Source of the DNA: Bugula neritina | Lineage: Eukaryota; Animalia; Bryozoa | Direction of reading: 5' to 3' | Assembly (NCBI GenBank): GCA_964035545.1 | Contig: OZ037765.1 | Coordinates: forward strand, 7,078,698 to 7,142,697 | Length of the DNA: 64,000 nucleotides | Shown: in pieces, positions 23,671 through 48,500 of the stretch | Layout: each line of letters starts with the position of its first letter | How positions within the stretch are numbered: position 1 is the stretch's first letter | The notes under the pieces: generated by a model | Told to the model about the DNA's origin: nothing | The model's database searches: none | Seen by the model: only the letters and a program-made list of their open reading frames with translations | Program-made: the position numbers and the translations under genes

Positions 23671-24234
23671 GTAGTGTGATAAGTGTGTAGGCATAAAACT
23701 CCATATAGTTTGCTAAAACATCCTTATAAAATTGATAGATATTTGTATAGATTATTGATTAGTTATGTAATGCATGATGGGAAGCAGTAATTATCCATTC
23801 CTCCTTTCTATAAGGCTGAATGTAGTGATATATTTCTCGTATAAAGGGTAAAGTGTGAAGTGCTGTGATTCTAAAACACAACTATTTGCCTGCTTCCGCA
23901 GATTTTACTCAAAAGTGATTATCATGTAAAAATTCACATGGGGTCTAAATACAAATATAACAGGAAGCTGACCTATTAAAACTATACGAATTGTGACATT
24001 AATTTATGGTTTTGTTTGAAAAAGCTAATCTTTACACAACAGAATATGTTTATAGGTTGTCTATGAGTTGTGCTGTTGATTAACACTTGTTTATAAGTAG
24101 CTGACATTGCTGACCTTTCACAACCATCTAAAGCTGTCACTATGTAAACAAAATAGTAGTTTAATTACTGAACTAATTGTTTCCCTTGTAGTAGTGAATT
24201 ACTCCAAACATACCCACTGCATATCCAAAAATTC

Positions 24235-25071
<837 letters not shown>

Positions 25072-26788
25072 ACCACTTTATATACAATGCCAGACTTATT
25101 ATGAACGTTTTACTGCTGAATTTTTAAAAAGGTCACTTCCTTTCTGATCTATCAGAGTTTACTAGAAGGTAATCTGTGGAGTTATTCTCTCTGAAATATG
25201 TGGAATAAAATACTATGTAGTATACACTGTTGCGTTTTATACAGAAAGAGCTAGCTTACAGATTTTAGTATTATCTAATTCCCAGTATCAACCCAGTTGT
25301 ATTTGATAAACGAAAATGTTTGACATCAGTTTGATTGAGTTTCTTATCTTTTCGCACCATTATCATACATGCAGCAATGATAAAATAAGTCATGACAGAA
25401 TTGTATTATATTATGCAGCTAGTTCATCTTAAACACACCCTAGTAAAACTCTTCATATATTGGTAATTACTTATCTAACAAATTGCTGTATGCTTATTAA
25501 GTATGTTCTCATTATTACTTGTACCTTTACAATACTGCTAATTACTCAAGACATGCATGCTTAGTGTTTATATAATAATTGGTATTTGAATAAGCATTAC
25601 AAAGTGGTTTACCTCAAGTGGAAATGGAAGGAAGATGCAAGCTGAATACAGCTCAGCAAATGATATAAAGAATTTTCGTTCTGGTTTGTTTATTTATATT
25701 TTCTGTTTGTTTCCACCATCTGTGCTATAAAATGTTGAATAGTCTTACACAACTGGCTTTAATAATCTATCACACTAGTAAGTTTATAGTCTTAGACTCT
25801 TTTTTATATTCAATTAGCATGTGTTAAACTAAACAGGCGTTTAAGAACAGCTTTAATTGTTTTTTATTCGGATACATTGAAGCATCAAAATCAGAAAATT
25901 GATAAAATTAAGTTTTGTATTCAAAAAGTTGTCAACCAGAGCAGTTTTAGAAGGTTATCTGTCTTGAGAGATCTAGCCAGCCTGTGTATCATAATGGTGC
26001 AGTTCTATACTTACTATAGGCTACTTCACATATATTATTAGTAGCGGAAAGTAAATAACATCATTTACCCAGAGCTCCAAGTAGTCTAATCTATATAATA
26101 TATGTAAATAGAAAAGGTCTTTCCATAGGGCTGGCTCATTGCCATAAGCAAGGAAACATGGAATGGGTGGAACAGTTTTTACTAGCCAATCATTAGCCTT
26201 GAACGTAACACACCTCAGCCACCAAAAGTTCAATGATCCATTAGTAAGCTTTTTGTTTTACATCAGCCAAATTGCAGTAAGTTTTATTGTTGAAATTTAC
26301 AGCAACTTTTGTTATTGTTAATATTATTTAGGAATTGCCATTATCCATAATAATCAATTTCTCTAAGTCTAGTTAGGCACTTGTTTTGGTTTACAATAGG
26401 CGTTATTTTCACAAGCTCAACATTATAATTTGTTAATTTATTTGATCATGCTTCTCAAGGGCAACTGCTAATACTAGGAATGTGGAATGCATATCAGTTT
26501 GGTTGATGCCAGTGTTTCGTCATTTTATCTTAAACAAACTTAATCTTAAGTGAACTTTATACACGAAAGTAGTATACAGTCTATTTATAGACGGTATTTG
26601 ATTCCATTATTACTCTGTTTATCAAACACACAAGTAAGATATTTCCGAGCAACTGATATTGGATTTTATACTCGTTACAACATAGAATCTTCAACAATGA
26701 GACTTCACCAGATGTGATGTATTAGGAGTTTTTAGAACGGTCTCGGACTATATGACTATAGCCTTTTATTCAAATGAAAAGTTAGAGC

Positions 26789-29330: not shown

Positions 29331-29835
29331 TCAAAGATGCAGGCTTTTGCTATAAATAACCTTCTTCTGCTGGTCTTGAAGTCTAATGTAAAGTAACAAA
29401 ACTGAAATGAGCCACTAGTAAAATGGAATTGACAATACTTGGACTACACCTCTATCTGATATGATTATAATGTTTTGTACAAAGTCAACACCATCATATA
29501 TATTGCAGTATTTATCACTCCACATATCGATCAATTTTTGTGTAATCAGCTATTGGGTATTGTATTAGATTTATGATGACAACTTTATACAAGTGCTCTA
29601 CATAACTGCCATCATTCATTGAGTGTTTCAACATGAATTTAAGTTTGATTGCTGATAAAACCAAAAGCTTCTAGTTAAGTTACACTAATCAGCAATTTAT
29701 CTAGTAGAATATGATGTAATTCAAGTCATGTTGTAGTACAGTTATTACTAGTCGGTAAATTAGTCATTGTTGGATGTTTACCAGCATGGCAGTATCTATT
29801 CATTTAACCAATGTTCTAATCATCTACTACACTAT

Positions 29836-30286
29836 TGTATTGGTATGCCACCCAGAAGTATTGGCAGGCAGCCAATCATTAAAGCTTTCAAGCTTCAAAA
29901 GCTTTCACCAAAGCTACTATTAGCTGGCAGAGCTAGTTCATTCACTGTACTGCATGAGTCAGTGTATCATGATCAAACCGCCATATTTACACTCTTTGTA
30001 TGAATAAACTATCGGTTTCGGTATTGTGATGGCTAAGATTTTTATCCACGCATCAATATTGTAAGTTTATTAGAATTACAATAGTTCATGTCAATTTTTT
30101 GGTTCTGTAATATTCATAGTGTTCCTCTGAATTTTGATTTATATTGTGACTACTTATTTATACAATTTCTAATGTTTCCCATTTTATAGGGTACGATTTG
30201 ACAGTTAATAAACTCGAAAACCTGTTGCCAAGTTGGCTAGTAGTTAAAGCATATCTTGCAACCAGACACAAACACAAACCGATACA
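29836..30286 (+). repeat. 5' LTR (451 bp) with internal GT-AG intron 30061-30189 and AATAAA 30207-30212
   Basis: Direct repeat of 35564-36014. TG...CA ends. Donor ATT|GTAAGT, branch-like TTCTAAT, pyrimidine tract and TTTTATAG|G acceptor. Confidence 0.97.
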
Positions 30287-30309
30287 GTACCAATATTGCT
30301 GAGGCTGAC

Positions 30310-33300
30310 ATGGACCGACAGGACATAGTTAATCTCAAGAAGCAACGTACTACTCTGAGGTCTAAGGTAACAATGCTAACTAATCTCATAGAATCAGCAA
30401 TCTCTAGTAGCAACTCTACACAAGTGGAATGCCTGCGATCTCAGCTTGAATCTACATATCAAGAGTTTCTAACTATCCATTATGACTTTTTGGAATACGT
30501 TTCATCAGATGAGTCTATGGAAGACATTGCTTATGTTAATAAGATGAGTCCAGTAGAGTACTATCAAACTGTAAAGGCTAGTTATGACAAAGCTATTTCT
30601 GACTGTAATACTTGGCATAGCAAATTCTATAAAATCAAGCACAGCCTTATTTTAGCGATTAAGAAAGCCAATGGATTAGTCACTGATTGTACTGACAATA
30701 CTCTTATCACTGAACATCATAGGAAATGTGTAGCTCTTTCAGAAAGTTTGGCAGATACCATAGGTTTTTCTGATTTATTATTAGAACTAGATGAAGTTAT
30801 TTTATCTTTAGATTATTGTATGTCTAAGTTTACTCTTATGTCAAAGGCTCAGTCACAGAACATGAATTTCGAACACCGTGAATCTGATCCGTCCGTAGTC
30901 CGGTCCGGTCTTGCGGAGAGTGGTGTGGGTGGGGAGTCACCTTCAGACGGCGCGAGTCATGCACCGACTATGGTCGCGTCGAGTCGGTTGTTTTCTTCTA
31001 GATCACACCCTAGCACACATGAGGCTACTCTTGCACCAAATCCAGGTGTCACAGCAAGCGGTAGTGATAGGCAGGTACTATGGGAAGATCACACATCCGG
31101 TGAAGCTTTGGCGTCAAATCCAGGTGTCATAGCAAGTACCAATGTCAGAGATGTTCGTTCTTCTACATTCTCAGTACGTGATCTACATGGTAGTACTGAT
31201 CGTGCAGCTCATTCTGAATTTTTGATTCGCGGCGCAACTTCCTCGGTTGTCAATGCATATGATAGCTACCCTAATGGAACTAGTCAAATAAGTTATGACT
31301 CTAGACATACAGGTGGAAATAACTTCAATTCATCTATACATAAAACTCATTCACAACCCAATCCATTTAACGGCACTAGATACCATTGGCCGGAATTTAG
31401 GTCAGTGTGGCTAAGGTATGCCACTATGTTTTACGATGATGTCGATAGGGCTTGTGAATTAAAAAAATTTCTCACAGGCGAAGCTCTGGAGATGGTTCAG
31501 CCAATCTTTGCAACTCAGCCTCAAGCTTATGAGAGAATGATGTGTAGATTAGAAGAGGTCTACAATGATCCTAGCATGAGTGTGCAAGCAGTCTTCAACA
31601 ATCTACAAGAACTAAAGCCAGTAAAAGAAGGCGATGCACGAGAACTCGTCAAAATGGCCAATGCAGTAGAAAGTTCGTACAGCCAACTCGGTGAAGTGGG
31701 ACTGTTGCAAACTGTTATGCTGCCACAGGTCGATACTCTTGCAAACCTATTACCTACAAGCATTAGACGGGACTGGGATAGACACTTTCACATACTTACT
31801 CACGAGGAGAGAATCAAGCCATTCCCACACCTCATGAGGTTTCTAGAGCAAGAACGGCAGATAGCCCTCAGACGCATAGAAACCGTAAACCCGCAGTCCT
31901 CCAGTATGCATAAACAGAAGGTGAAAGCGTTCCACACTGAAAGCAGTGGCCCAAAGTCTAGTAGTAACAGGTCTACTAATAATAGCAAAACCATTGATAG
32001 TGAGAATTACTGTTTTATTCATCGCAGTGAGCGTCATTGTCTTGTTGAGTGCAGAAATTTCTTGGCGTTGTCTGTAGATGAAAGATACAAGTTAATAAAA
32101 ACTAATTCTCTATGTGCTAGGTGCTTGGGTGCCCATAAGCCCAAGTGCTGTCCAAATTTCCGAACCCCTTGTTCAGTCTGTGATAAAACAACCCACCATG
32201 TATTATTGTGCATCAAATCAGCTGAAACTAATACACATACCAATTGTAATACCAACAAGAATAAAGCAAGAGCTGATCAAATTAAGCACAAGAGTAACGA
32301 GAATTCTGAAGCGTCTGCTGTTAGCACCACGGTCCGTGTGTCTCCCAATCATGGAGCGCACAATCATCCAGGAAATGCTACAGTATTTGCCATTCAGCAG
32401 GCCCAAGTAGTGGGTACATCTCATACAGCTATTATATTCTTTGACGGCGGATCCAATGCTTCATTCATATCGGAGAGAGCCGCTAAAGCGTGGGGTGCGC
32501 GACAGATAGATAAGGTGAATTTGGAAATGAACACACTTGGTGAACATGAAGTTAGCGAAACTTCTACTATTTATGAAGTAAAGTTACAAACTCCAAAGGG
32601 AAGGACCTTTTCGATTTTAGCTTACAGCCTTCGGAAACTCACAGGGGCTATCAACAGGCCACTTGATGCAAACATCCTCAAATCTCTCTTCCCGAAAGTA
32701 GATACTCACAAGCTATTGAAGAAGACGGGACCCATCGACCTGCTAATTGGTAACGATCTTCTTGGATTGCATCCAAAACACCAAGTTGATCAAGCAGGAC
32801 CTCACCTCTATGTATATTCCGGACCCTTTGGACTGTGTGTGCAGGGATCACACCCTACCCTTAGCAACTTTTCTACACTTCCATCCTCATCTTTTCATGT
32901 ACAGGCTACCATGGCGCATGAGAAGTTAGAGGAAGTTGAATTCACTCAAAGCATACACAACGACACGCTCAACAGTTGTGATTTTGAATTGTCTACAGTT
33001 TCTACGCCAACTTACAGTGTCAATAGTCCCGACGCATCTCCCAGTCAGTTTGCAAAGTCATTTTCAAGACCTCAGACTATTATAAATTATGGTGAATCAC
33101 ATACTATAGCCACTGAATGTGGTATGATTGAGTCAGCCGATGATTCCGACCCTTTACAGAGCCCGGGAGACCCAGACACTGAGTCTGCAGGACAAATCGG
33201 TTCTGGACAGTTGAACAGATCTTTAGAAGTCAATGACTCTATGTCCATGTCTGTAGAGATTAAAAGAAAGTATGAATTTACTAGCAGTACCTCTATCACA

Positions 33301-35334
33301 CAATCCACGCCTGTTCCGGCCAATGAGAGGGCAGAATCTAAAGCGACTGCTAAAGGGGTAAACAAAGCTACAGCTAAATGTCGTATAGCACCCATAAAAC
33401 AACAACTCAAGATTCCTCAACTAGAACTCAATGCGGCCGTATGGTCAAAGAGAGGCAGACAAGTTATTAAGACTGAAATGCGCTATGAGTTTGAGAAAGT
33501 TTATCAGCTTATCAATTCTAAAACGGTGCTCAAGATGTTCCAAAAGAAGTCAACAAGGTTTCATGTTTACGAAGGTGTACGCATTGGAGAAATTCAGGGA
33601 GCAACCAATGGGGATATGAGCTGCTGGCACTGGGTAAGTGGCAAGGAAAACACAGCAGATTGGCTTACAAGAGGGAAGCCTGTCAATGACATTGGACCTG
33701 AGAGTGAATGGTGGAGAGGCCCAAATTTTCTCTATCTGCCTGAGGATCAATGGGATATAAAATCGCCATCTGACTCGAATGAGCTTGTCTTTGGAGAGAA
33801 GAAAATAGTTTACACCGTCACTGCATCAACAGAAGTCCAATCATTTATTAAATATGAAAATTTCAGCAGCCTCAAGAGTCTAACATGGACAATAGCTCGA
33901 GTTTGCAACATCTTCAAATACAAAAGTTTTAAGGGAATCCAATCTGATCTCATCACCGTGGAAGATCTACGGCAGACCAAACTCTACTTACTGAAGCAGG
34001 TACAACGCACTATAGATTCTGAGTTGAGCAAGATTAAAGAGAAATACACAAGGCTTCACCCCATTAAGACAGAGAGTGAAGTATGGATAGTAGGCAGTAG
34101 ACTCCTAAGGCATAACCCCATGACAGCGATTAAAACGCACACGCAATCAATCTTTCCCACCTCTCACTACTTTACTTACTTGGCAATGCGGCAGGCACAC
34201 ATAAACAGCTATCACCGTGGCCGAGATGCAACACTCGCAAGATTCCGAGAAGAGTTTTGGACTATGCAAGGATCTAAGGTTGCTAGGGGCATAGTAACAT
34301 CATGCCAAATGTGTCGACTCAAACAACCTCGCTTTACTGATCAACTGATGGGAAGTCTTCCTACAGAACGACTAACGACCGGACCGCCATTCAACAATGT
34401 AATGATAGATCTTTTTGGTCCGTATATTGTGAGAGGAGAAAAACAGACTAGAACTTCGAGCAAAGCTTATGAAGTAATATTCACAGACATCAGTTCACGA
34501 GCAGCACACATCGAAGCAGTTTTCGGATATGACAGTGATTCTTTCCTGTTGGCATTAACTCGATTCGTCAACATTCGTGGCTGGCCATCCAAGATTTATT
34601 CTGATCCTGGAACACAGTTAGCTGGAGCAGAAAAAGAACTCAAAGATATGTGGAGACGCATGGACAAAGATTCTATCAAGAAAACCAGTGCAGAAAATGG
34701 GTTGCAATGGGAATTTGGACCTGGTGACAGCCCCTGGTATCAGGGCGCTGCTGAATCACTCATAAAGGCTGTCAAGAGATGTTTCACATTTTCAAAGAGC
34801 AACCGCCGGCTTTCACCTACAGAATTTCTCACAATCTGCACTGAAGCTGCAAACACACTAAATGAAAGGCCATTGGGATTACTGCCAGATTCAGACTCTG
34901 AGATCAACATATTAACACCTAACTGTCAACTTATTGGACGACCCTTCATCAAGAATCCTGGCAACTGGAATACAGACTACTCCTTAAGGGGGCGACTGGC
35001 TTTGGTAAATACAGTCTCAGATGACTTCTGGCGGAAGTGGACCGAATTGTATGCACCCACACTGATTCATCACCAAAAGTGGCATACCCCAAGACGAAAC
35101 TTTCAGGTGGGAGATGTTGTAGTGGTTATGGATCCAAATCAGCTGCGTAATCAGTATAAACTAGCTCGAGTACATCAAGTATATCCGAGCAAGGATGGCG
35201 TAGTAAGAAAAGTAGCCTTTTCCTACAAAAACTATAAGGTAGCAGGGAAACTGAGGGACTATGTAGGCTGTAAAGACAATATCATAACCCGCAGCGTGCA
35301 TAGGTTGGCTTTATTAACTGAAGTGAACCCATAA
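30310..35334 (+). CDS. BEL/Pao polyprotein: Gag (three Cys/His knuckles), aspartic protease, truncated RNase H, integrase; no reverse transcriptase
   Basis: First ATG at 30310, in frame with the tracked ORF. Gag PFNG...WPEF; knuckles CFIH..H...C, CARCLGAH...C, CSVC...HHVLLC; protease FFDGGSNASFI and DLLIGND; RNase H C-part AKCRIAP...IPQLELNAA and W.WVSGKENTADWLTRG; integrase H..H/CQMC, IDLFGP, YSDPGTQL, AAESLIK; C-terminal FWRKW...VGDVV. No YxDD-containing RT segment between protease and RNase H. Confidence 0.93.
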   Translation: MDRQDIVNLKKQRTTLRSKVTMLTNLIESAISSSNSTQVECLRSQLESTYQEFLTIHYDFLEYVSSDESMEDIAYVNKMSPVEYYQTVKASYDKAISDCNTWHSKFYKIKHSLILAIKKANGLVTDCTDNTLITEHHRKCVALSESLADTIGFSDLLLELDEVILSLDYCMSKFTLMSKAQSQNMNFEHRESDPSVVRSGLAESGVGGESPSDGASHAPTMVASSRLFSSRSHPSTHEATLAPNPGVTASGSDRQVLWEDHTSGEALASNPGVIASTNVRDVRSSTFSVRDLHGSTDRAAHSEFLIRGATSSVVNAYDSYPNGTSQISYDSRHTGGNNFNSSIHKTHSQPNPFNGTRYHWPEFRSVWLRYATMFYDDVDRACELKKFLTGEALEMVQPIFATQPQAYERMMCRLEEVYNDPSMSVQAVFNNLQELKPVKEGDARELVKMANAVESSYSQLGEVGLLQTVMLPQVDTLANLLPTSIRRDWDRHFHILTHEERIKPFPHLMRFLEQERQIALRRIETVNPQSSSMHKQKVKAFHTESSGPKSSSNRSTNNSKTIDSENYCFIHRSERHCLVECRNFLALSVDERYKLIKTNSLCARCLGAHKPKCCPNFRTPCSVCDKTTHHVLLCIKSAETNTHTNCNTNKNKARADQIKHKSNENSEASAVSTTVRVSPNHGAHNHPGNATVFAIQQAQVVGTSHTAIIFFDGGSNASFISERAAKAWGARQIDKVNLEMNTLGEHEVSETSTIYEVKLQTPKGRTFSILAYSLRKLTGAINRPLDANILKSLFPKVDTHKLLKKTGPIDLLIGNDLLGLHPKHQVDQAGPHLYVYSGPFGLCVQGSHPTLSNFSTLPSSSFHVQATMAHEKLEEVEFTQSIHNDTLNSCDFELSTVSTPTYSVNSPDASPSQFAKSFSRPQTIINYGESHTIATECGMIESADDSDPLQSPGDPDTESAGQIGSGQLNRSLEVNDSMSMSVEIKRKYEFTSSTSITQSTPVPANERAESKATAKGVNKATAKCRIAPIKQQLKIPQLELNAAVWSKRGRQVIKTEMRYEFEKVYQLINSKTVLKMFQKKSTRFHVYEGVRIGEIQGATNGDMSCWHWVSGKENTADWLTRGKPVNDIGPESEWWRGPNFLYLPEDQWDIKSPSDSNELVFGEKKIVYTVTASTEVQSFIKYENFSSLKSLTWTIARVCNIFKYKSFKGIQSDLITVEDLRQTKLYLLKQVQRTIDSELSKIKEKYTRLHPIKTESEVWIVGSRLLRHNPMTAIKTHTQSIFPTSHYFTYLAMRQAHINSYHRGRDATLARFREEFWTMQGSKVARGIVTSCQMCRLKQPRFTDQLMGSLPTERLTTGPPFNNVMIDLFGPYIVRGEKQTRTSSKAYEVIFTDISSRAAHIEAVFGYDSDSFLLALTRFVNIRGWPSKIYSDPGTQLAGAEKELKDMWRRMDKDSIKKTSAENGLQWEFGPGDSPWYQGAAESLIKAVKRCFTFSKSNRRLSPTEFLTICTEAANTLNERPLGLLPDSDSEINILTPNCQLIGRPFIKNPGNWNTDYSLRGRLALVNTVSDDFWRKWTELYAPTLIHHQKWHTPRRNFQVGDVVVVMDPNQLRNQYKLARVHQVYPSKDGVVRKVAFSYKNYKVAGKLRDYVGCKDNIITRSVHRLALLTEVNP

Positions 35335-35563
35335 ATGACTGATCTACCTTCTTGGCCGCGTGTACGCTCGTGTCGCTGGAGGGGTCTGCATTCAACCATT
35401 TTTCGGGGGACGGGCTGGTGCGCGGAGGGGTCAGCGGATTGGTGCAAGAATTTCATGGTCTGTGACTGATCCTATTTTGTTTTGTTTGTTTTGTTTGTTT
35501 TGATTTACATAATTTATCAATATTTGTCAGAATAGTATCTGCCAAACAATTCGACCCCACCGA

Positions 35564-36014
35564 TGTATTGGTATGCCACCCAGAAGTATTGGCAGGCAGC
35601 CAATCATTAAAGCTTTCAAGCTTCAAAAGCTTTCACCAAAGCTACTATTAGCTGGCAGAGCTAGTTCATTCACTGTACTGCATGAGTCAGTGTATCATGA
35701 TCAAACCGCCATATTTACACTCTTTGTATGAATAAACTATCGGTTTCGGTATTGTGATGGCTAAGATTTTTATCCACGCATCAATATTGTAAGTTTATTA
35801 GAATTACAATAGTTCATGTCAATTTTTTGGTTCTGTAATATTCATAGTGTTCCTCTGAATTTTGATTTATATTGTGACTACTTATTTATACAATTTCTAA
35901 TGTTTCCCATTTTATAGGGTACGATTTGACAGTTAATAAACTCGAAAACCTGTTGCCAAGTTGGCTAGTAGTTAAAGCATATCTTGCAACCAGACACAAA
36001 CACAAACCGATACA
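35564..36014 (+). repeat. 3' LTR (451 bp); intron copy at 35789-35917
   Basis: Direct repeat of 29836-30286, followed by TSD ACTAT. Confidence 0.97.
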
Positions 36015-36589
36015 ACTATGTATTCTGTGCATTACTCCTAGGACAGTCTCTGTACTGCTAATAACTTCATTAAAGCAGTTTGCAAACTTACCTTTCCACT
36101 GGTTTCCTTCGATGTAAATGTGTCCATTAGGTGAATGAAAAATCCATTCGCATGAATCATGGAAATGTAGTGATTATGTGGATTTTTCATTGATGTTTGG
36201 TAACAGTTGCATCGAATAAGACCTGCAACCACAAATTCTTTCATATGGGCTGAGCATCCATTCCAAAGTAATGGAAACGAAGTAATGTAATGGAAATGCA
36301 GTGATAAAATTTCAACATTTCAATAAATGTTTATTTCAATATACATATTTTTATTTCAATATATTTTTATTTAAATTTTTCAAAGCATCTTCTGGTATCT
36401 TCTAAAATTCTCACTAATTATTTTGTAAACATCACAACCATTTGTTTTATCTGTATTCGTATTAATCTGAATATATTTGCTTACATCTTCCCATCAGGGT
36501 GGTAGATGTAAACATGTGTATGTTATACATATAGAATAGACATATTAGAGTAGAGTATATGACCGAGATAGTCCTTATGCTTGTTGCAG

Positions 36590-39500: not shown

Positions 39501-42500
39501 ATACGTAATGTACTTCCTTATCAAGTAGTTTTCAACGCCCACACGATGTCTATTCTTGTTTTGGGCCTATTGCAGCATTTATCTGGCAAAGAGCTGCGTC
39601 AATCGATGATCCTTCCAGGAGACAGGTTAGTAGATATGCTTGTTGGTCATTTTACTTAATTTAGTACACACTATATATCGCTAGTTTTTAGCTATTTTTC
39701 ACAGTTTTGCCGCTAATGTATATTATATATAGTTTCTTGCATTAAACTGATAAAATATTAACAAATACAACTGAATAAGCCAGGTTTTTTCTAGTTTTGT
39801 TTGATTTTCTATGTTTTATCCTAATTTTTCAGTAAATTTGGGTGTGTGGGCGTGATGGAAAAAGCATCCATTCCGCACACTCAAATGTGGACTAAATTGA
39901 TAGTTTTCTCGATAAATCTGGAACTGTCAACTGAGTCCACAGTTCCCATTGGCAGTTGTAGTGCCAACCCTACTTAGAAGTTTAGTTTAGACCTTGGCAA
40001 CCCTCCCTTTACAGGCATGAGGATGTTTCCAGATTTTTGGAATACTAAAAAAATTACCAATAAATAATTTCTAATATTGTGCAATAAATATTTTATGGGC
40101 AAATACTTGGTAATCTGAAAGTTGAAGACATCATTGTATTTACCAGCTGGTGCACTGATAAATCATTGAAGTCAAATCAATGATGTTGGCTAGCAATTGA
40201 AATGTCAAGTAATTAAATCAATATTTTCTATAGCATACATTTTTACAAAGGCTGATTTCATAGTGTACTTTTATGAATATTGAACAAGAATGAAAGACTG
40301 GTTGGCAATTTTTGCATTAGTGCCATAAATTTATTAAGTAGGATCCAAAATAATTCACCATAAATGCAAATGTATAAATCCAGTTGAACTTGGATTTGGC
40401 AAAGTGTTCATTTATTGATAGCTTTAAGGTTTACTAATGGTTGATATTTACAGTATGTTTTTGCACCAGAAATTATCATAATCTGTCATTTGCCCTGAAA
40501 AGCACACAAAACATAATTTAGAAAATCTAATAGCAACTGAATAATCTACATGATAAATTATTTTAAGCATGTCTAAGCATCTTGCATCATCATGAGGTAA
40601 AATTTGCCTCCTCCAAACAAGAACTGGGCTAAAGAATGCCCTTAAAATTTGTGAAATTATTTTACAGATTTTGCGGATATGAGTTTTAATATGGTTAGTA
40701 ATGAAAGGCTATTGATACTGTGTAGTCACTGCTTCCAGTAGTCGCTGTGAACAGCACTGCCTGCAGTAGTCACTGCTTGCAGTAGTCACTGCCTGCAGTA
40801 GTCACTGCTTCCAGTAGTCGCTGTGAACAGCACTGCCTGCAGTAGTCACTGCTTGCAGTAGTCACTGCCTGCAGTAGTCACTGCTTCCAGTAGTCGCTGT
40901 GAACAGCACTGCCTGCAGTAGTCACTGCTTGCAGTAGTCACTGCTTGCAGTAGTCGCTGCTTCCAGTAGTTGCTGTGAACAGCACTGCTTGCAGTAGTCA
41001 CTGATTGCAGTAGTCACTGCTTGCAGTAGTCACTGCCTGCAGTAGTCACTGCCTGCAGTAGTCACTGCTTGCAGTAGTCGCTGTGAACAGCACTGCCTGC
41101 AGTGTCACTGCCTGCAGTATCACTGCTTGCATTAGTCACTGCCTGCAGTAGTCACTGCCTGCAGTAGTCACTGATTACAGCAGTCACTGCTTGCAGTAGT
41201 CACTATTGATGGTGTATCATCTTGAGAATAGATTATGTTAAGAGAAACACTGTGCAGCCCCACCACATCAGTAAGCTGCTTCCTTCATTAAAATATCAAG
41301 TGTTTTCCTGAAGAGCAATCTGCATTTGCATTTGGCTCTCAACATTAGCTTGTCAACCAAGGGATGGCAAGAGAGACTGCAAAGACCTGTTGTTTAGGTT
41401 TAAACAGGAAATGTGCACTTTGTGACACTTGGGCCACAGTTCAAAGCTATATATAGATAAGCTGAAGGCTCAGCTTATAATCCGTGTATTTACATCTGTG
41501 ATGTGGAATTAAGATCTGCTTTACTTGAGATAATGTCTTACTGCCTTAACCATTAGTATTGCAATCTTCATTTATGTTTGTCCTATAAGAGATTTTTATA
41601 GCCTATGGGACCAGAAAGACTGTAGCCATTGGGTCTCGAATGTGCTATTTACACTAAAACAGAGAGGGTCAACAATTTCATTCAATAAATTTTCCCATTT
41701 TCCCAACAATTTATTTCATTATAACAAACTTACACAACATTAACAAGCTGTTATTTTTTTAGCCGTTAGTAATGTTTAAAACTGCTAGCTAAGTTAGAAA
41801 TTAAAACAGTTTATTTAAGTAGTTTTGCAATTTTTATGAGCAGCATTATTTGCTAAAGCAAAATTCGTAATCATAGGTGGCTCAACCTACCAACTCTAAA
41901 ACCAGAAGGGCTCAGTTTGTAAATAATAAGGTTTGTCTCCCCTGTTTTAATGTTTCGTGTGCATGCAGAATAACAAAGCTTAAATTTTCTTCACTGGACA
42001 TAAGCAGATGGTTGCACTGTTATTGGTTTTATTGTTGGGAACATGTAATCGTACACTATTTTTCTACTTTGTTTGTCATTCTATTTTTGCTACAATTTCA
42101 TCATAGAGGAGTGTGCACAGCTGAATGCTTTACTTTTTGTGGCTAAAAACTCACATCTCTTATGTTGTGTTGCGTTTGTTAAGTTTTGCTGATGCACGCA
42201 ATATTTGGCCAAAGCTCTTATCTTTAAGCACTTCTATTGATGAGGAAATCCTAATTAACTGTGATAATATTCTGGTGAAATTGTGACTAATGATATGTTC
42301 ACTTGCCAAAACTCACTGCTGTGTAGCATTTGGTTTTTTTGTGGTTTTCTGTTGCAAAATTTGCAAGTGTTTGGTTTCTTGACCTAATAATATACCACTG
42401 AATCTTAGCTGCTAGTGGGTAGTATTTTGTATGTTTAGGGCGCAATTATAAATTTAAAGCAAAACCGTGTATAATTTTATAATTTTGTGTTTAATCAAAT

Positions 42501-45500
42501 TGCTTACCTTTTTTTAGTGGAATACAGCTGATGTAATGGAAACAGAATTTGAAGATCTAGGTAATTTTTTTAATATTTAATATATCGTGAATTGGTTTTG
42601 CTTGCTGCAAAGCCTTACGTAAGACTATCTCAATACCCTCTTTTGCTGACATTTTGTTTACTGAAAAATTTCCTACCGTTGAATACAAACTTCTTCTTGT
42701 TAAATGGATGTCATTCTTTTTAAAGTCTAACTTCCTTCTAGTTTTATTTACTGTTTCTTCATGTCTGATTGTAGTTAAAGGAGATACGGAAATATTTAAT
42801 AAATTCTTGAAGGCTCACAAGTGTTACGATTTAATACCAGCCAGTGCCAAGCTGGTAGTCTTCGACACTCAACTCAGTGTGAGTATCTACTAGTCCTTAA
42901 CTCTCAACTCAGTGTGAGTATCTAGTAGTCCTTTACTCTCTACTCAGTGTGAGTATCTAGTAGTCCTTTACTCTCCACTCAGTGTGAGTATCTAGCAGTC
43001 CTTAACTCTCTACTCAGTGTGCGTATCAAGTAGTCCTTTACTCTTAACTCAGTGTGAGTATCTAGCAGTCCTTTACTCTCTACTCAGTGTGAGTATCTAG
43101 TAGTCCTTAACTCTCCACTCAGTGTGAGTATCTAGCAGTCCTTAACTCTCAACTCACTGCGACTGTCTACAATGCTGCTATTGCAATGTTTACTATTACG
43201 TCTTAAAATGATTAATTTACAAGTTTTTCCTTGAACCTTTGCTAATATAAACTGTTGAGTGTCATGCAATAATACCCTTTCAGCCAGCCTAGTATGACTT
43301 CCCATTCCATGCGTATGACTCACTGGTTTAGGTGGGAAGGGGAGGTAGTGATGCTAACTGCAACGGTTTGATTTATGTCCACATGATATGCAGTAGCTCT
43401 ACATAATGACCTTGAACTAAGTGTATCCATCTGTCAGTTGATGTAAAATGAAAGTGCTGCTTCTTCAAATAAAGCCTGGCTTTTAATCAGAACTCTAAGA
43501 GCAGCCAGGTGCCAAAATAGCTGCCGAGTTTGCATGGGAAAACATATGGCTCAGTTATGGTATTCTCTTCTTTGATCACAGTCCAACCTCTGAAATAAAG
43601 CTAATATCCATACATGGTTATTTATATTTCAGCCATCCGTCTGATCAACCATTATTTATGTTAGTCTGATCAACAAGAACTGAGTGTAAACTATCATTTA
43701 TCTGTAATTTGCTTTTTGCAATAGAAATACTTGATCAAAGTTTCACAGTATATTCTTTAATTGAAAAAATATTGTTTAGCTTTGCATAAACCTATAAACA
43801 ATAATAGTGATTTTTATATCTGAATTTAGTATAACAACATAACATGGGGATAGAGTGGGGCAAGGTACTGTGGGGTAGGGCAGGGTGATATAGAGTAGGG
43901 TACTATAGAGTAGGGTAGGGTACTATAGAGTAAAGTAGGGTACTGTAGAGTAGGGTACTGTGGGGTAGGGTACTGTGGGGTAGGGCAGGGTAACATGGAA
44001 TAGAGTAGGGTACTATAGAGTAGAGTAGGGTACTGTAGAGTAGGGTACTGTGGGGTAGGGCAGGGTACTGTGGAGTACTGTGGGGTAGGGCAGGGTAACA
44101 TAGAGTAGGGTAATATAGATTAGGGTAGGGTACTATGGAGTAGAGTAGGGTAATGTAGGGTAGAGTAGGGATAATAATATCAATACGAATACACCATTTT
44201 GAAACTGCCTCCCACTCACTATCCGCAGGTGCAACTCACATTCAAATTCCAGAGTGGCTTCTTTTACCAAGATTATATCTTTCCCTATTTAACAATAACA
44301 ATACTACATCAGTTATAGAATAAGTCAGTCCTTTAAACTGTTAGCCTTTTCATTAACTAAAAAAATTGACTAGCATTAATATAGTAAAAACTGAAATAAA
44401 ATTCACTATTTCACAGTCTTGCCGCTTTGTCTATAAAATCTACTGTTGGAGTTATCTCTCCTTGCAGGTGAAGAAGGCATTCTACGCCCTCTCATACAAC
44501 TGTGTGAAGGCAGCACCTCTCTGGGACAGCTCTAAGCAAAACTTTGTTGGAATGCTGACTATATCCGACTTTATCTTCCTCCTCACAACCTACTACAAGA
44601 CCCCAGAGGTGTGTATACTGTGTGTTGTGTATACTGTGTGGTGTGTAGACTGTGTGGTGTGTAGACTGTGTGGTGTGTATACTGTGTGGTGTGTATACTG
44701 TGTGGTGTGTGTACTGTGTGGTGTGTGTACTGTGTGGTGTGTGTACTGTGTGGTGTGTATACTGTGTGGTGTGTATACTGTGCGGTGTGTATACTGTGTG
44801 GTGTGTATACTGTGCGGTGTGTATACTGTGCGGTGTGTATACTGTGCGGTGTGTATACTGTGCGGTGTGTGTACTGTGTGGTGTGTGTACTGTGTGGTGT
44901 GTGTACTGTGTGGTGTGTGTACTGTGTGGTGTGTGTACTGTGCGGTGTGTATACTGTGCGGTGTGTGTACTGTGCGGTGTGTGTACTGTGCGGTGTGTGT
45001 ACTGTGCGGTGTGTATACTGTGCGGTGTGTATACTGTGCGGTGTGTATACTGTGAGGTGTGTATACTGTGTGGTGTGTATACTGTGTGGTGTGCATACTG
45101 TGCGGTGTGTATACTGTGCGGTGTGTATACTGTGCGGTGTGTATACTGTGCGGTGTGTATACTGTGTGGTGTGTATACTGTGCGGTGTGTATACTGTGTG
45201 GTGTGTATACTGTGTGGTGTGTATACTGTGCGGTGTGTATACTGTGTGGCATGTATACTGTGCGGTGTGTATACTGTGTGTTGGTTATACTGTGTGGTGT
45301 GTATACTGTGTGGTGTGTATACTGTGTGGTGTGTATACTGTGTGGTGTGTATACTGTGCGGTGTGTATACTGTGTGGTGTGTATACTGTGCGGTGTGTAT
45401 ACTGTGTGGCATGTATACTGTGCGGTGTGTATACTGTGCGATGTGTATACTGTGCGGTGTGTATACTGTGTGGTGTGTATACTGTGGTGTCTGTAGTGGA

Positions 45501-48500
45501 GGTAGGTGCAGGAAGAAGGAGGAATTGAGAAAAGCCTGTGTTCTAGATTAGAAATGTAACAAAAGAAGTTGCGTTCTCATAAGAATTTCAACCCACACCC
45601 CAAACTTAGGCCATCCCATTTTCTCCACTACTGCTCCTAAATGCTGTGGTTTTGGTAGTTTTGGTGTAGTGTTTGCTGTGTAGTATGTATATTGTAGTGT
45701 GTAGTGGTATGTTTAGCTTGTAGTGGTATATTGTAGTGTGTAGTGGTATGTTTAGTATGTGGTATGTTTATATCTACCCATTGAGTATAGACATCTCTGT
45801 GAATTGTGCATATCTATCAGGCATTACTGTGTACAGATATCATTGCATGTCAATTTATTTTGTTAATGTTGTTGGCCAGTAAACACACAGTGCCTGGGCA
45901 GTACTTGCCACAATCTATGTAATGGGATCTTCTAACTTGCAAACTCTGCACACAATTGCAATTTATTGAATGCTTCAAAACTTGCAATTTGCCAAATCTA
46001 TTTTGATTTCGATTTGCCAGCCAACTTTTCACATTTATATGACTATTTCAACACATATTTTACTTTTAATAATTCTATGCAGGGCTGAGGCCAACTGTCA
46101 GGTGAAATTGAAGCAGCGTTTCTGCGTAATTCAATTTATTCTAATCTTCTGCATTCACTGTGAAGAATTTATTTTTCTGCATCATAAATAATTTTTTAAA
46201 TCGCAGTCAGTTGTAGACTTGGTATACTTATATTATCCAATCAGCAAACTTGGCCACTTGTTGCATAGCTGTTAATTTTTTTGCCAAAATTAATGGGGAA
46301 TGTATTCAGTGTCCAAAGTATTACTCATTATTTAATTGTTGAGGTTTTCCATCAATAAGTCAAAGTAAAATCAGTTAATTATTCAAGTAAAATATTATTG
46401 TATGTAAGTAAGCTTATAATTTTGTCCAAGCTTCTATGCTACAATATGCCAAGTTTGTAAGTCTATCCAAAGTTATTTTTACTTAATTCAAAGATAGAAG
46501 TAGGTGTAGTGATGGAGAAAAGCCTGTGTTTCAGATTAGAAATGTAGCAAAAGAAGTTATGTTCTCAAAAGAAGTTCAACTGGTGCCCCAAACCCAAATT
46601 TATTAAGAAAATTAAAGAACTTAGGCTATCTAAATTTCTCCACTACTGCTCCTAAATGTAAAAATATCTTTTTTATAAATTAAAAATAATTGCATTTTTA
46701 TTAAAATTACTACATTTAAGAAAATTTTAAATTCAACCGTTGCATTTACAGGCAAAGTTAGCTGATCTGGAGGACCATAAGATATCAACATGGCATACAC
46801 TAATGTCTGGTAGGTACGAGGGTCTGGTGTCCATATCCCCAGACGCCAGTCTCCACCGGGCAGTCAGGACTCTGCTCAGAACCAGGATACACAGACTTCC
46901 TATAGTTGACCCTCTCACCGGCAATGCTCTCTACATTCTCACTCACAGACGCGTTCTCAAGTTCCTCTACCTTTATGTGAGTCATCTTAACTCCCTTCCA
47001 TCAACCACTACAGTTTAGTGATATTATTTTGTTGACATATCTGTTTATGCATGATTGCTCTAATAATAGTCTTTAATAACTATGCACCAGGGAAACTGCT
47101 TTTTGCAGCCAGCTGTGTTTTTTATTTAAAATCCTGACACACTGTAAAAAGATTTTTATTTCGACATAAAATTGTGTAATAATAACAAAATTATTGGCAA
47201 CGATGTAATATTTCAACTAATCCTAAGTAGGCTGTTCTCTTTTATATCTGACATTCTAATTGCAGTAGTAAACAATCACAGCTCGAATGCTATTAATATT
47301 GTATGGTTTATGGCTTACCCTCGGCTTGTTTCTTGGCATCAGTTCAATTCTGCTAGCAACTTTGCAAACACCTGCAGCTCGTGTCTGTATCAGTGACATT
47401 TCAATGCAGGTCTGGATATTTATATCCAGTGCAGAAAGAAAGTAAATAAACAGAACACTAACTAGAAAACATTTGAGGGTAGTAGAAAGGTCGAGCTGAT
47501 TTTTCTTTTTCCTCCTGAAGCGGGGATTGTTGCTGTGCGTCACTGCACACCTGAGTGATGAGTTAGTTTCAAGCTCCTAATTTCATTAAACAAAACTGTG
47601 TTTTCGAAATTCTAACCACAATTTGAGAGTACTTATTTGCAGTAATTGATTACATGAGTCATTTTACTAGTTAAATAGGGAATTTAGATTTAAATAAACT
47701 TGGTAAGTAACTTTGGAAATTACTGTAATCTGTCTTGTTTCACTTGTCTCTAAATGTGTCATGTTTTACTCCATATTATCATGACTAAGAGTATTCCCAC
47801 CAATTGTTTGTGTAGATGAGACGACTTCCACAACCTATGTACATGGAGCAATCTCTAGATGAGTTGAAAATTGGAACCTATAGTAACCTGGCTAAGGTTA
47901 GTCCAACCTATAGTAACTTAGCTAAGGTTAGTTCAACCTGTAGTAACCTAGCTAAGGTTAGTTCAGCCTATAGTAACTTAGCTAAGGTTAGTCCAACCTG
48001 TAGTAACCTAGCTAAGGTTAGTTCAGCCTATAGTAACCTAGCTAAGGTTAGTTCAGCCTATAGTAGTAACCTAGCATAGCATTCTACTAGATAGTATTGT
48101 GTGCACTTCAACTTACAGCAACTTGCTTACACCTCTGTACCAGCAGCATATTAGTTGAGTGCACTTACTTACTAATGTATTACATGTAGTTTTTACTCTG
48201 CCTGGTAGGTATGAGAGTTCTATTGGTTTTATGATAGAATACATACATGTTGACATTTGTATTCAATGACTCACAGACATGTGCCTTAGAGCTGGATAAA
48301 ACAATTATGTGGGCATCATTCTAGACTCTAGCAGTAATTTGATCAAATTTGAAACTATTTGCAATAGTTTACTATTATGCATACATTAAAATTTGCATGC
48401 GTAACAGTACATCATACACCCTGTATAGCGTATATGAAGTGTTGCCCCAGGAACAGACAACTTCCCAACAGCTTTATAAAATATATATTATTAAGGTTGA

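Follow-up and report, generated by a model that had tools for sequence, protein, structure and literature searches.

How does an LTR retrotransposon prime its reverse transcription when the site beside its 5′ LTR fits no tRNA end? This question is raised by an element in the window, by which we mean the whole 64,000-nt stretch of Bugula neritina DNA analysed here. A first-pass annotation, made from the sequence alone, had suggested that the primer-binding site of this element complements a splice junction formed within its own LTR, such that the primer exists only after splicing. This suggestion is supported by intron-less LTRs in the same genome, by co-variation of site and junction in about 16 lineages, and by the absence of a fit to tRNA; one caveat that had accompanied it, an alternative pairing partner, fell away. 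The pairing of junction and site is a step that we consider shown by the sequence together with its co-variation. That this BEL/Pao element goes on to prime its own reverse transcription with its own spliced RNA, rather than with a host tRNA, appears most likely.

The element is a complete, very young BEL/Pao LTR retrotransposon, with 5′ and 3′ LTRs and a target-site duplication all present (all features on the + strand). The duplication, ACTAT, lies at 29831-29835 and again at 36015-36019. Between these copies, the 5′ LTR (29836-30286) and 3′ LTR (35564-36014) are each 451 bp, begin with TG, end with CA and are 100% identical. We set the LTR limits by aligning both LTRs of the element to each other, and position 30287 therefore directly adjoins the 5′ LTR. 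LTRs of the TG..CA form with a short duplication, here 5 bp, fit BEL/Pao, and the coding region agrees. A single gag-pol frame of 1674 codons plus a stop (30310-35334) gives Pfam matches to DUF1759, the tail of Peptidase_A17, Integrase_H2C2 and DUF5641, that is, a Gag with DUF1759, a Pao-type pol segment (recognized by the Peptidase_A17 model) and an integrase followed by DUF5641. The nearest proteins have an identical domain set.

A reverse transcriptase domain is missing from this frame. Aligned to a relative at 68% identity (P0002), the frame covers only residues 5-870 and 1352-1999 and lacks about 340 residues. The missing reverse transcriptase segment would lie around 32950-33370 of the window, near residues 880-1021 of the frame. 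By its domains, the window copy is a deleted BEL/Pao member and not a separate family. Because it has no reverse transcriptase, it must have been mobilised by enzymes of sister copies, whose frames in this genome are 1440, 1676, 1696, 1923 and 2058 aa long. Besides the window copy, the 216-Mb genome contains 21 or more copies of the 5′ LTR plus leader that are 96-100% identical and represent several internal deletion variants; it also contains other BEL/Pao families at 29-35% identity. Open frames in several internally deleted variants, together with identical LTRs and a clean target duplication, point to mobilisation of such variants in trans. Elsewhere in the window, we noted two tandem-repeat arrays (40646-41133, period about 16 nt; 42809-43204, period about 35 nt) and two anomalies of strand composition, with a GC skew of -0.54 at 24001-26000 and of +0.36 at 44001-46000.

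Two further signals complete this anatomy. An AATAAA at 30207-30212 is the likely polyadenylation signal for the 3′ LTR copy, and most relatives carry an AATAAA-like signal within about 10-30 nt after the second exon's contribution to the primer (see below). Just before the 3′ LTR, at the usual place of a polypurine tract, lies a cytosine-rich tract (35551-35563), a motif kept in relatives; a cytosine-rich rather than polypurine tract also directly precedes the 3′ LTR in L071, L075, L078, L079, L080 and L081. Its position suggests that the tract may serve as plus-strand primer. No conserved pairing partner for it was found in the 300 nt upstream of the 3′ LTR, and a hairpin partner was rejected, with duplex energies no better than those of shuffled tracts in 7 of 9 lineages.

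Directly after the 5′ LTR stands the 12-nt putative primer-binding site GTACCAATATTG (30287-30298). It contains no TGG with which the CCA end of a tRNA could pair. As the first-pass annotation had claimed, the LTR contains an intron of 129 nt (30061-30189), with the donor ATT/GTAAGT at 30060/30061, a pyrimidine-rich tract, and the acceptor TATAG/G at 30189/30190 (/ denotes the splice position); a second copy lies at 35789-35917 in the 3′ LTR. Its removal joins 30054-30060, the 7-nt exon-1 half of the predicted primer, to GGTAC at 30190-30194, the exon-2 half. Base for base, the site is the exact reverse complement of the joined sequence: 30054-30060 pairs with 30292-30298 and 30190-30194 with 30287-30291. 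Base 30194, at which the primer is predicted to be cut and to end, thus lies opposite 30287 at the LTR edge. Unspliced RNA, as had also been stated, pairs over only 8 nt (30054-30061 with 30291-30298); it ends 4 nt short of that edge. In older relatives, the complementarity extends to 15 nt (CAT plus the 12-mer, with an A at the position equivalent to 30299), and the exon-1 half grows to 10 nt with the inclusion of 30051-30053; in the window copy, a mismatch at position 13 of the duplex (30299) limits the match to 12 nt.

Such complementarity is far beyond chance. When all 5174 internal 10-mers of the window element were compared with the possible junctions of its own LTR, 8 matched some GT-AG junction and none matched a junction with a consensus donor (analytic p of about 5e-5). 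The 8-9 nt match between the site and the 5′ end of the LTR, which the annotation had raised as a caveat, does not track the site in either L071 or L079, and we rejected it.

If the intron is spliced and the spliced RNA reverse transcribed, the junction should be found in genomic DNA, and it is. Searching the genome with the predicted junction returned 8 exact matches, each in an LTR that lacks exactly 30061-30189 and otherwise matches the window LTR, at 99-100% identity, on either side of the gap. These precise retrocopies show, at the DNA level, that this junction forms in vivo and that reverse transcription takes place on spliced RNA; exact removal of this kind is what marks a spliceosomal intron. 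The intron-bearing form is represented by 49 LTRs in the same genome, against the 8 without it. Pairs among these 8 make up three complete elements in which both LTRs are intron-less, and no mixed element, with the intron in one LTR and not in the other, was present among the elements seen. The intron-less elements retain the same 12-nt site.

Intron-less copies are spread over different internal structural variants, and for three of four of them the nearest neighbour is an intron-bearing copy. Phylogenetic analysis of 28 copies gave a polytomy, and the copies are mosaics. An AU test does not formally reject one common origin for the young intron-less copies (p = 0.295), and independent intron losses are argued only by the nearest-neighbour and structural-variant observations. 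The intron itself reaches well beyond this young family. A diverged family member in the same genome, L042, has a homologous intron with its signals intact, the intron is present in about 19 LTRs belonging to a family of 90% identity, and relatives from other organisms have it at the same place. In the intron-less LTRs of both L042's family and the 90% family, the 12-mer is contiguous. Judged by this distribution, the LTR intron is old.

The annotation had also proposed examining whether site and junction co-vary in diverged families. They do, in about 16 lineages, and on both sides of the intron. Relatives recovered by a protein search reach 65-68% identity, and many others lie near 50%; the bryozoan Watersipora subatra is among the sources. 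We examined contigs for ten of these relatives and 80 metagenome loci. The lineages, at 33-69% protein identity, come from other assemblies, metagenomes and Watersipora, with ten tabulated, about six more, and three distant ones in addition. Their layout recurs: a consensus donor, an intron, an acceptor, the remainder of R and U5, the LTR end, and then a site complementing the element's own exon-exon junction. In the ten tabulated lineages, the intron measures 93-418 nt and the loop of R and U5 on the acceptor side 51-112 nt. Donors agree with the consensus at 3-4 of 4 positions, and 8-13 of the 14 bases before the acceptor are pyrimidines. Pairing with spliced RNA extends over 9-15 bp and starts at the LTR edge in every lineage; pairing with unspliced RNA extends over 4-11 bp and in every lineage ends 3-5 nt short of it.

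The exon-1 half differs among the window element, L071, L074, L077, L085, L095 and L100, and the site changes with it. More telling is the exon-2 half, which reads GGTAC in the window element and several others, GGAAC in L076, GTTAC in L105 and L110, GTCAC in L113, GTTTTAC in L078 and L104, GTTCTAC in L082, GTTTCAC in L083, and TAC in L081 (Watersipora), and which is 8-9 nt long in the three distant lineages (L124, L125 and L135). Each of these is the complement of the first bases of that lineage's own site. Changes in the exon-2 half that are tracked by the site can be explained only by pairing with spliced RNA, because in unspliced RNA the exon-2 bases lie 93-418 nt away (ten lineages) and pairing ends 3-5 nt early. 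In the intron-less lineages L075 (the sister of L078), L079, L080 and L049, the junction sequence is contiguous over 14-23 nt (23 nt in L079).

Controls bear out these matches. Of internal 10-mers, 0-0.06% match a junction with a consensus donor. In an automatic scan, matches of at least 10 bp were found in 17 of 45 real loci and in 3 of 45 when the sequences were reversed; two of the 17 real matches were rejected as coding sequence. The automatic match of L111/L112, which lies inside gag, is a false positive. The copy of L076 is in a tandem arrangement in which the LTR end cannot be fixed. As a side observation, four intron-less LTRs in the same genome as the window (C9:377523, C2:5896012, C2:22516120 and C7:9428135) carry the same junction variant as L071, an A-to-T change in the exon-1 half, indicating that the L071 lineage is present in this genome too.

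Together, these observations suggest the following model. The transcript would start in the LTR, placing the short intron in the repeated (R) region. Once the intron is removed, 30060 would adjoin 30190, forming the 12-nt stretch that pairs with the site beside the LTR. The RNase H of the element would then, as in Tf1, cut the RNA after 30194, and DNA synthesis would proceed from the new 3′ end across U5 and the remainder of R, from 30286 back to 30195. This 92-nt stretch (30195-30286), the loop between primer and site, would thus be the template of the minus-strand strong-stop DNA. The short DNA would next transfer to the RNA's 3′ end, where synthesis would continue through the 3′ GGTAC, the intron, exon 1 and U3. 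The intron of both new LTRs would be copied from the 3′ copy, such that an unspliced 3′ copy regenerates it and a spliced one yields two intron-less LTRs. Plus-strand synthesis would copy the primer back into the site, rewriting the site from the junction in every cycle.

Since both progeny LTRs would take their intron from the RNA 3′ end, the model accounts for the all-or-none state of the elements and for the intron-less LTRs, about one-seventh of the total, as a by-product. The corollary drawn by the annotation, that the 3′ LTR copy must stay unspliced for both LTRs to regain the intron, fits what we see: every element seen carries the intron in both of its LTRs or in neither. The model requires one and the same intron to be spliced out near the RNA's 5′ end yet mostly retained near its 3′ end, which seems plausible. 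Being the last to be transcribed, and having its acceptor only about 40 nt from the poly(A) site, the 3′ copy may escape splicing for these reasons. We also looked for a conserved structure of R and U5. From nine LTRs, RNAalifold predicts a hairpin between the primer sequence and a block at about 30226-30240; with compensatory changes at 2 of its 26 pairs, the hairpin is not established. The predicted pairing, of 30054-30065 with this conserved R block near the likely poly(A) site, could sequester the primer.

Some genomic copies appear to preserve traces of the priming itself. In L023, the LTR end and the 12-nt site are followed by 15-16 nt that reverse-complement exon 1 (30038/39-30053), after which the sequence jumps into gag. 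This is the structure that would be expected if plus-strand strong-stop DNA had read on into an LTR-derived RNA primer and then been mistransferred. Two more such read-through copies lie at C2:23752771 and C1:27092658, the latter belonging to an older family and carrying that family's own exon-1 sequence after the site. Across the three copies, 10-16 nt following the site reverse-complement exon 1 upstream of the junction; a first exon of 7 nt is unlikely. In a further copy, L027 (C3:14161973 region), 73 nt of pol (33575-33647 of the window) are inserted exactly after the site, and the leader resumes at 30307.

A survey of alignment columns across 25 young copies (1800 columns) drew attention to two positions. 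All four bases occur at a single column, 30299 (C in 13 copies, T in 9, A in 2 and G in 1), and three bases at 13 columns, one of which is 30194; the 12-nt site is invariant in all copies seen. The variant at 30194 is found in both LTRs of two elements, and the base after the site usually differs from the one that a longer primer would dictate. Under the model, 30299 and 30194 are the expected ends of the two strong-stop DNAs, where untemplated bases are expected. We noticed this link post hoc and treat it as supporting only, and the variability at 30194 may be due in part to its CpG context.

Could the pairing serve a purpose other than priming? Co-variation by itself demonstrates pairing, not priming, and the duplex could be a structural RNA contact, in packaging, dimerisation or translation control, with some other primer at work; for 5 of 8 lineages, minimum-energy folding of the spliced leader does predict the duplex. 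Against this, the site adjoins the LTR in every lineage, which is by definition the place of the minus-strand primer 3′ end. No other candidate site lies between the LTR and the start codon, where there is likewise no TGG for a tRNA CCA end, and the read-through copies show that the RNA copied into plus-strand DNA carried exon-1 sequence joined to the site. We therefore regard a purely structural role as improbable.

A second alternative is self-priming by unspliced RNA, in which only 30054-30061 would pair with 30291-30298 and the GGTAC match would be an inherited coincidence. The first base of the intron and the first base of exon 2 are both G, and for this reason the exon-1-side changes and the structure of L023 fit unspliced RNA equally well. 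The exon-2 halves do not: they vary by lineage, each complementing its own site, and this co-variation already contradicts such a reading. Unspliced pairing would also leave 3, 4 or 5 nt up to the LTR edge, bases that would have to be U5 and to be trimmed from every 3′ LTR, and it would consist of just 4-5 bp in L082 and L083. Priming by unspliced RNA is accordingly very unlikely. Least credible of all is a host small RNA as primer, whether a tRNA fragment or another non-coding RNA, with the LTR match incidental: among the genomic occurrences of the 12-mer, of which 33 of 40 were inspected, none of the 15 non-LTR loci that hold it has a tRNA gene, the remaining inspected occurrences are LTRs or unrelated unique sequence, and no host RNA explains why each of about 16 different sites, from different hosts, fits the LTR junction of its own element.

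Priming by the element's own spliced RNA thus remains the reading that we favour, and it has partial counterparts in known systems. Like Tf1/Tf2 and the Tf1/sushi group of Ty3/gypsy elements, the window element has a site next to U5 that complements its own LTR-derived transcript and not a tRNA 3′ end. Tf1 self-primes with RNase H cleavage of an 11-nt duplex, the RNA cut being needed to free a 3′ end (PMC7175516); the duplex length is close to the 9-15 nt in the clade of the window element. Unlike in Tf1, the primer stretch is not contiguous and probably not at the very 5′ end of the RNA: it is split by the 129-nt intron, would exist only after splicing, and in read-through copies is preceded by 15 nt or more of RNA sequence. 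The domain set is that of BEL/Pao and not of the Ty3/gypsy chromovirus lineage. The window element appears to work like Tf1 but is no member of the Tf1/sushi group.

Internal tRNA fragments prime some elements, among them copia, which uses an internal fragment of the host initiator tRNA; there, the primer 3′ end is cut inside a longer RNA and the site is without TGG. The window element resembles copia in both respects, with a predicted primer 3′ end arising from a cut inside a longer RNA and a site without the TGG of a CCA-end match. It differs in that the site in its clade follows each element's own LTR, whereas the copia primer is a host tRNA. In HTLV-1/BLV and the foamy viruses, the major splice donor lies in R, the intron extends to a point far downstream, and the products of splicing are subgenomic mRNAs. 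These viruses share with the window element splice signals in an LTR-derived leader and a life cycle shaped by the choice between spliced and unspliced RNA. Here, however, the whole intron lies inside the LTR, and in those viruses splicing has no part in primer formation.

The first-pass annotation was aware of no description of the mechanism, and we found no published account of it. A full-text literature search, limited to sources outside subscription, returned nothing relevant on self-priming in BEL/Pao or on introns within LTRs, and neither the main BEL/Pao survey nor the Sinbad paper takes up priming. To our knowledge, BEL/Pao is the least studied LTR superfamily, and we know of self-priming of reverse transcription from one group of Ty3/gypsy elements so far. 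Judging from the relatives, the same splicing-made primer arrangement is most likely present in a whole clade in marine animals. If so, it would explain the presence of an intron inside an LTR, the coexistence of intron-bearing and intron-less LTR forms, and the failure of annotation tools, which look for tRNA-type sites or contiguous self-complementarity, to locate this clade's priming site. Sharp and cheap predictions for RNA-seq and for the mapping of cDNA ends also follow from the model.

If the model is correct, self-priming would extend to BEL/Pao, and under a new principle: the primer would be absent from both the DNA and the primary transcript, and would be assembled by the host spliceosome. 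Splicing and the priming of reverse transcription, thought to be separate in retroelement biology, would become linked. A further reading, which we put forward tentatively and with slightly less than even confidence, is that splicing acts as an obligatory licence for replication, with the 5′ copy of the intron removed to prime, the 3′ copy kept to transmit, and the host spliceosome serving as a checkpoint for reverse transcription. About one-seventh of the LTRs are irreversibly intron-less, yet intron-bearing lineages persist across distant hosts; under such a licence, selection on the element would be what keeps the intron.
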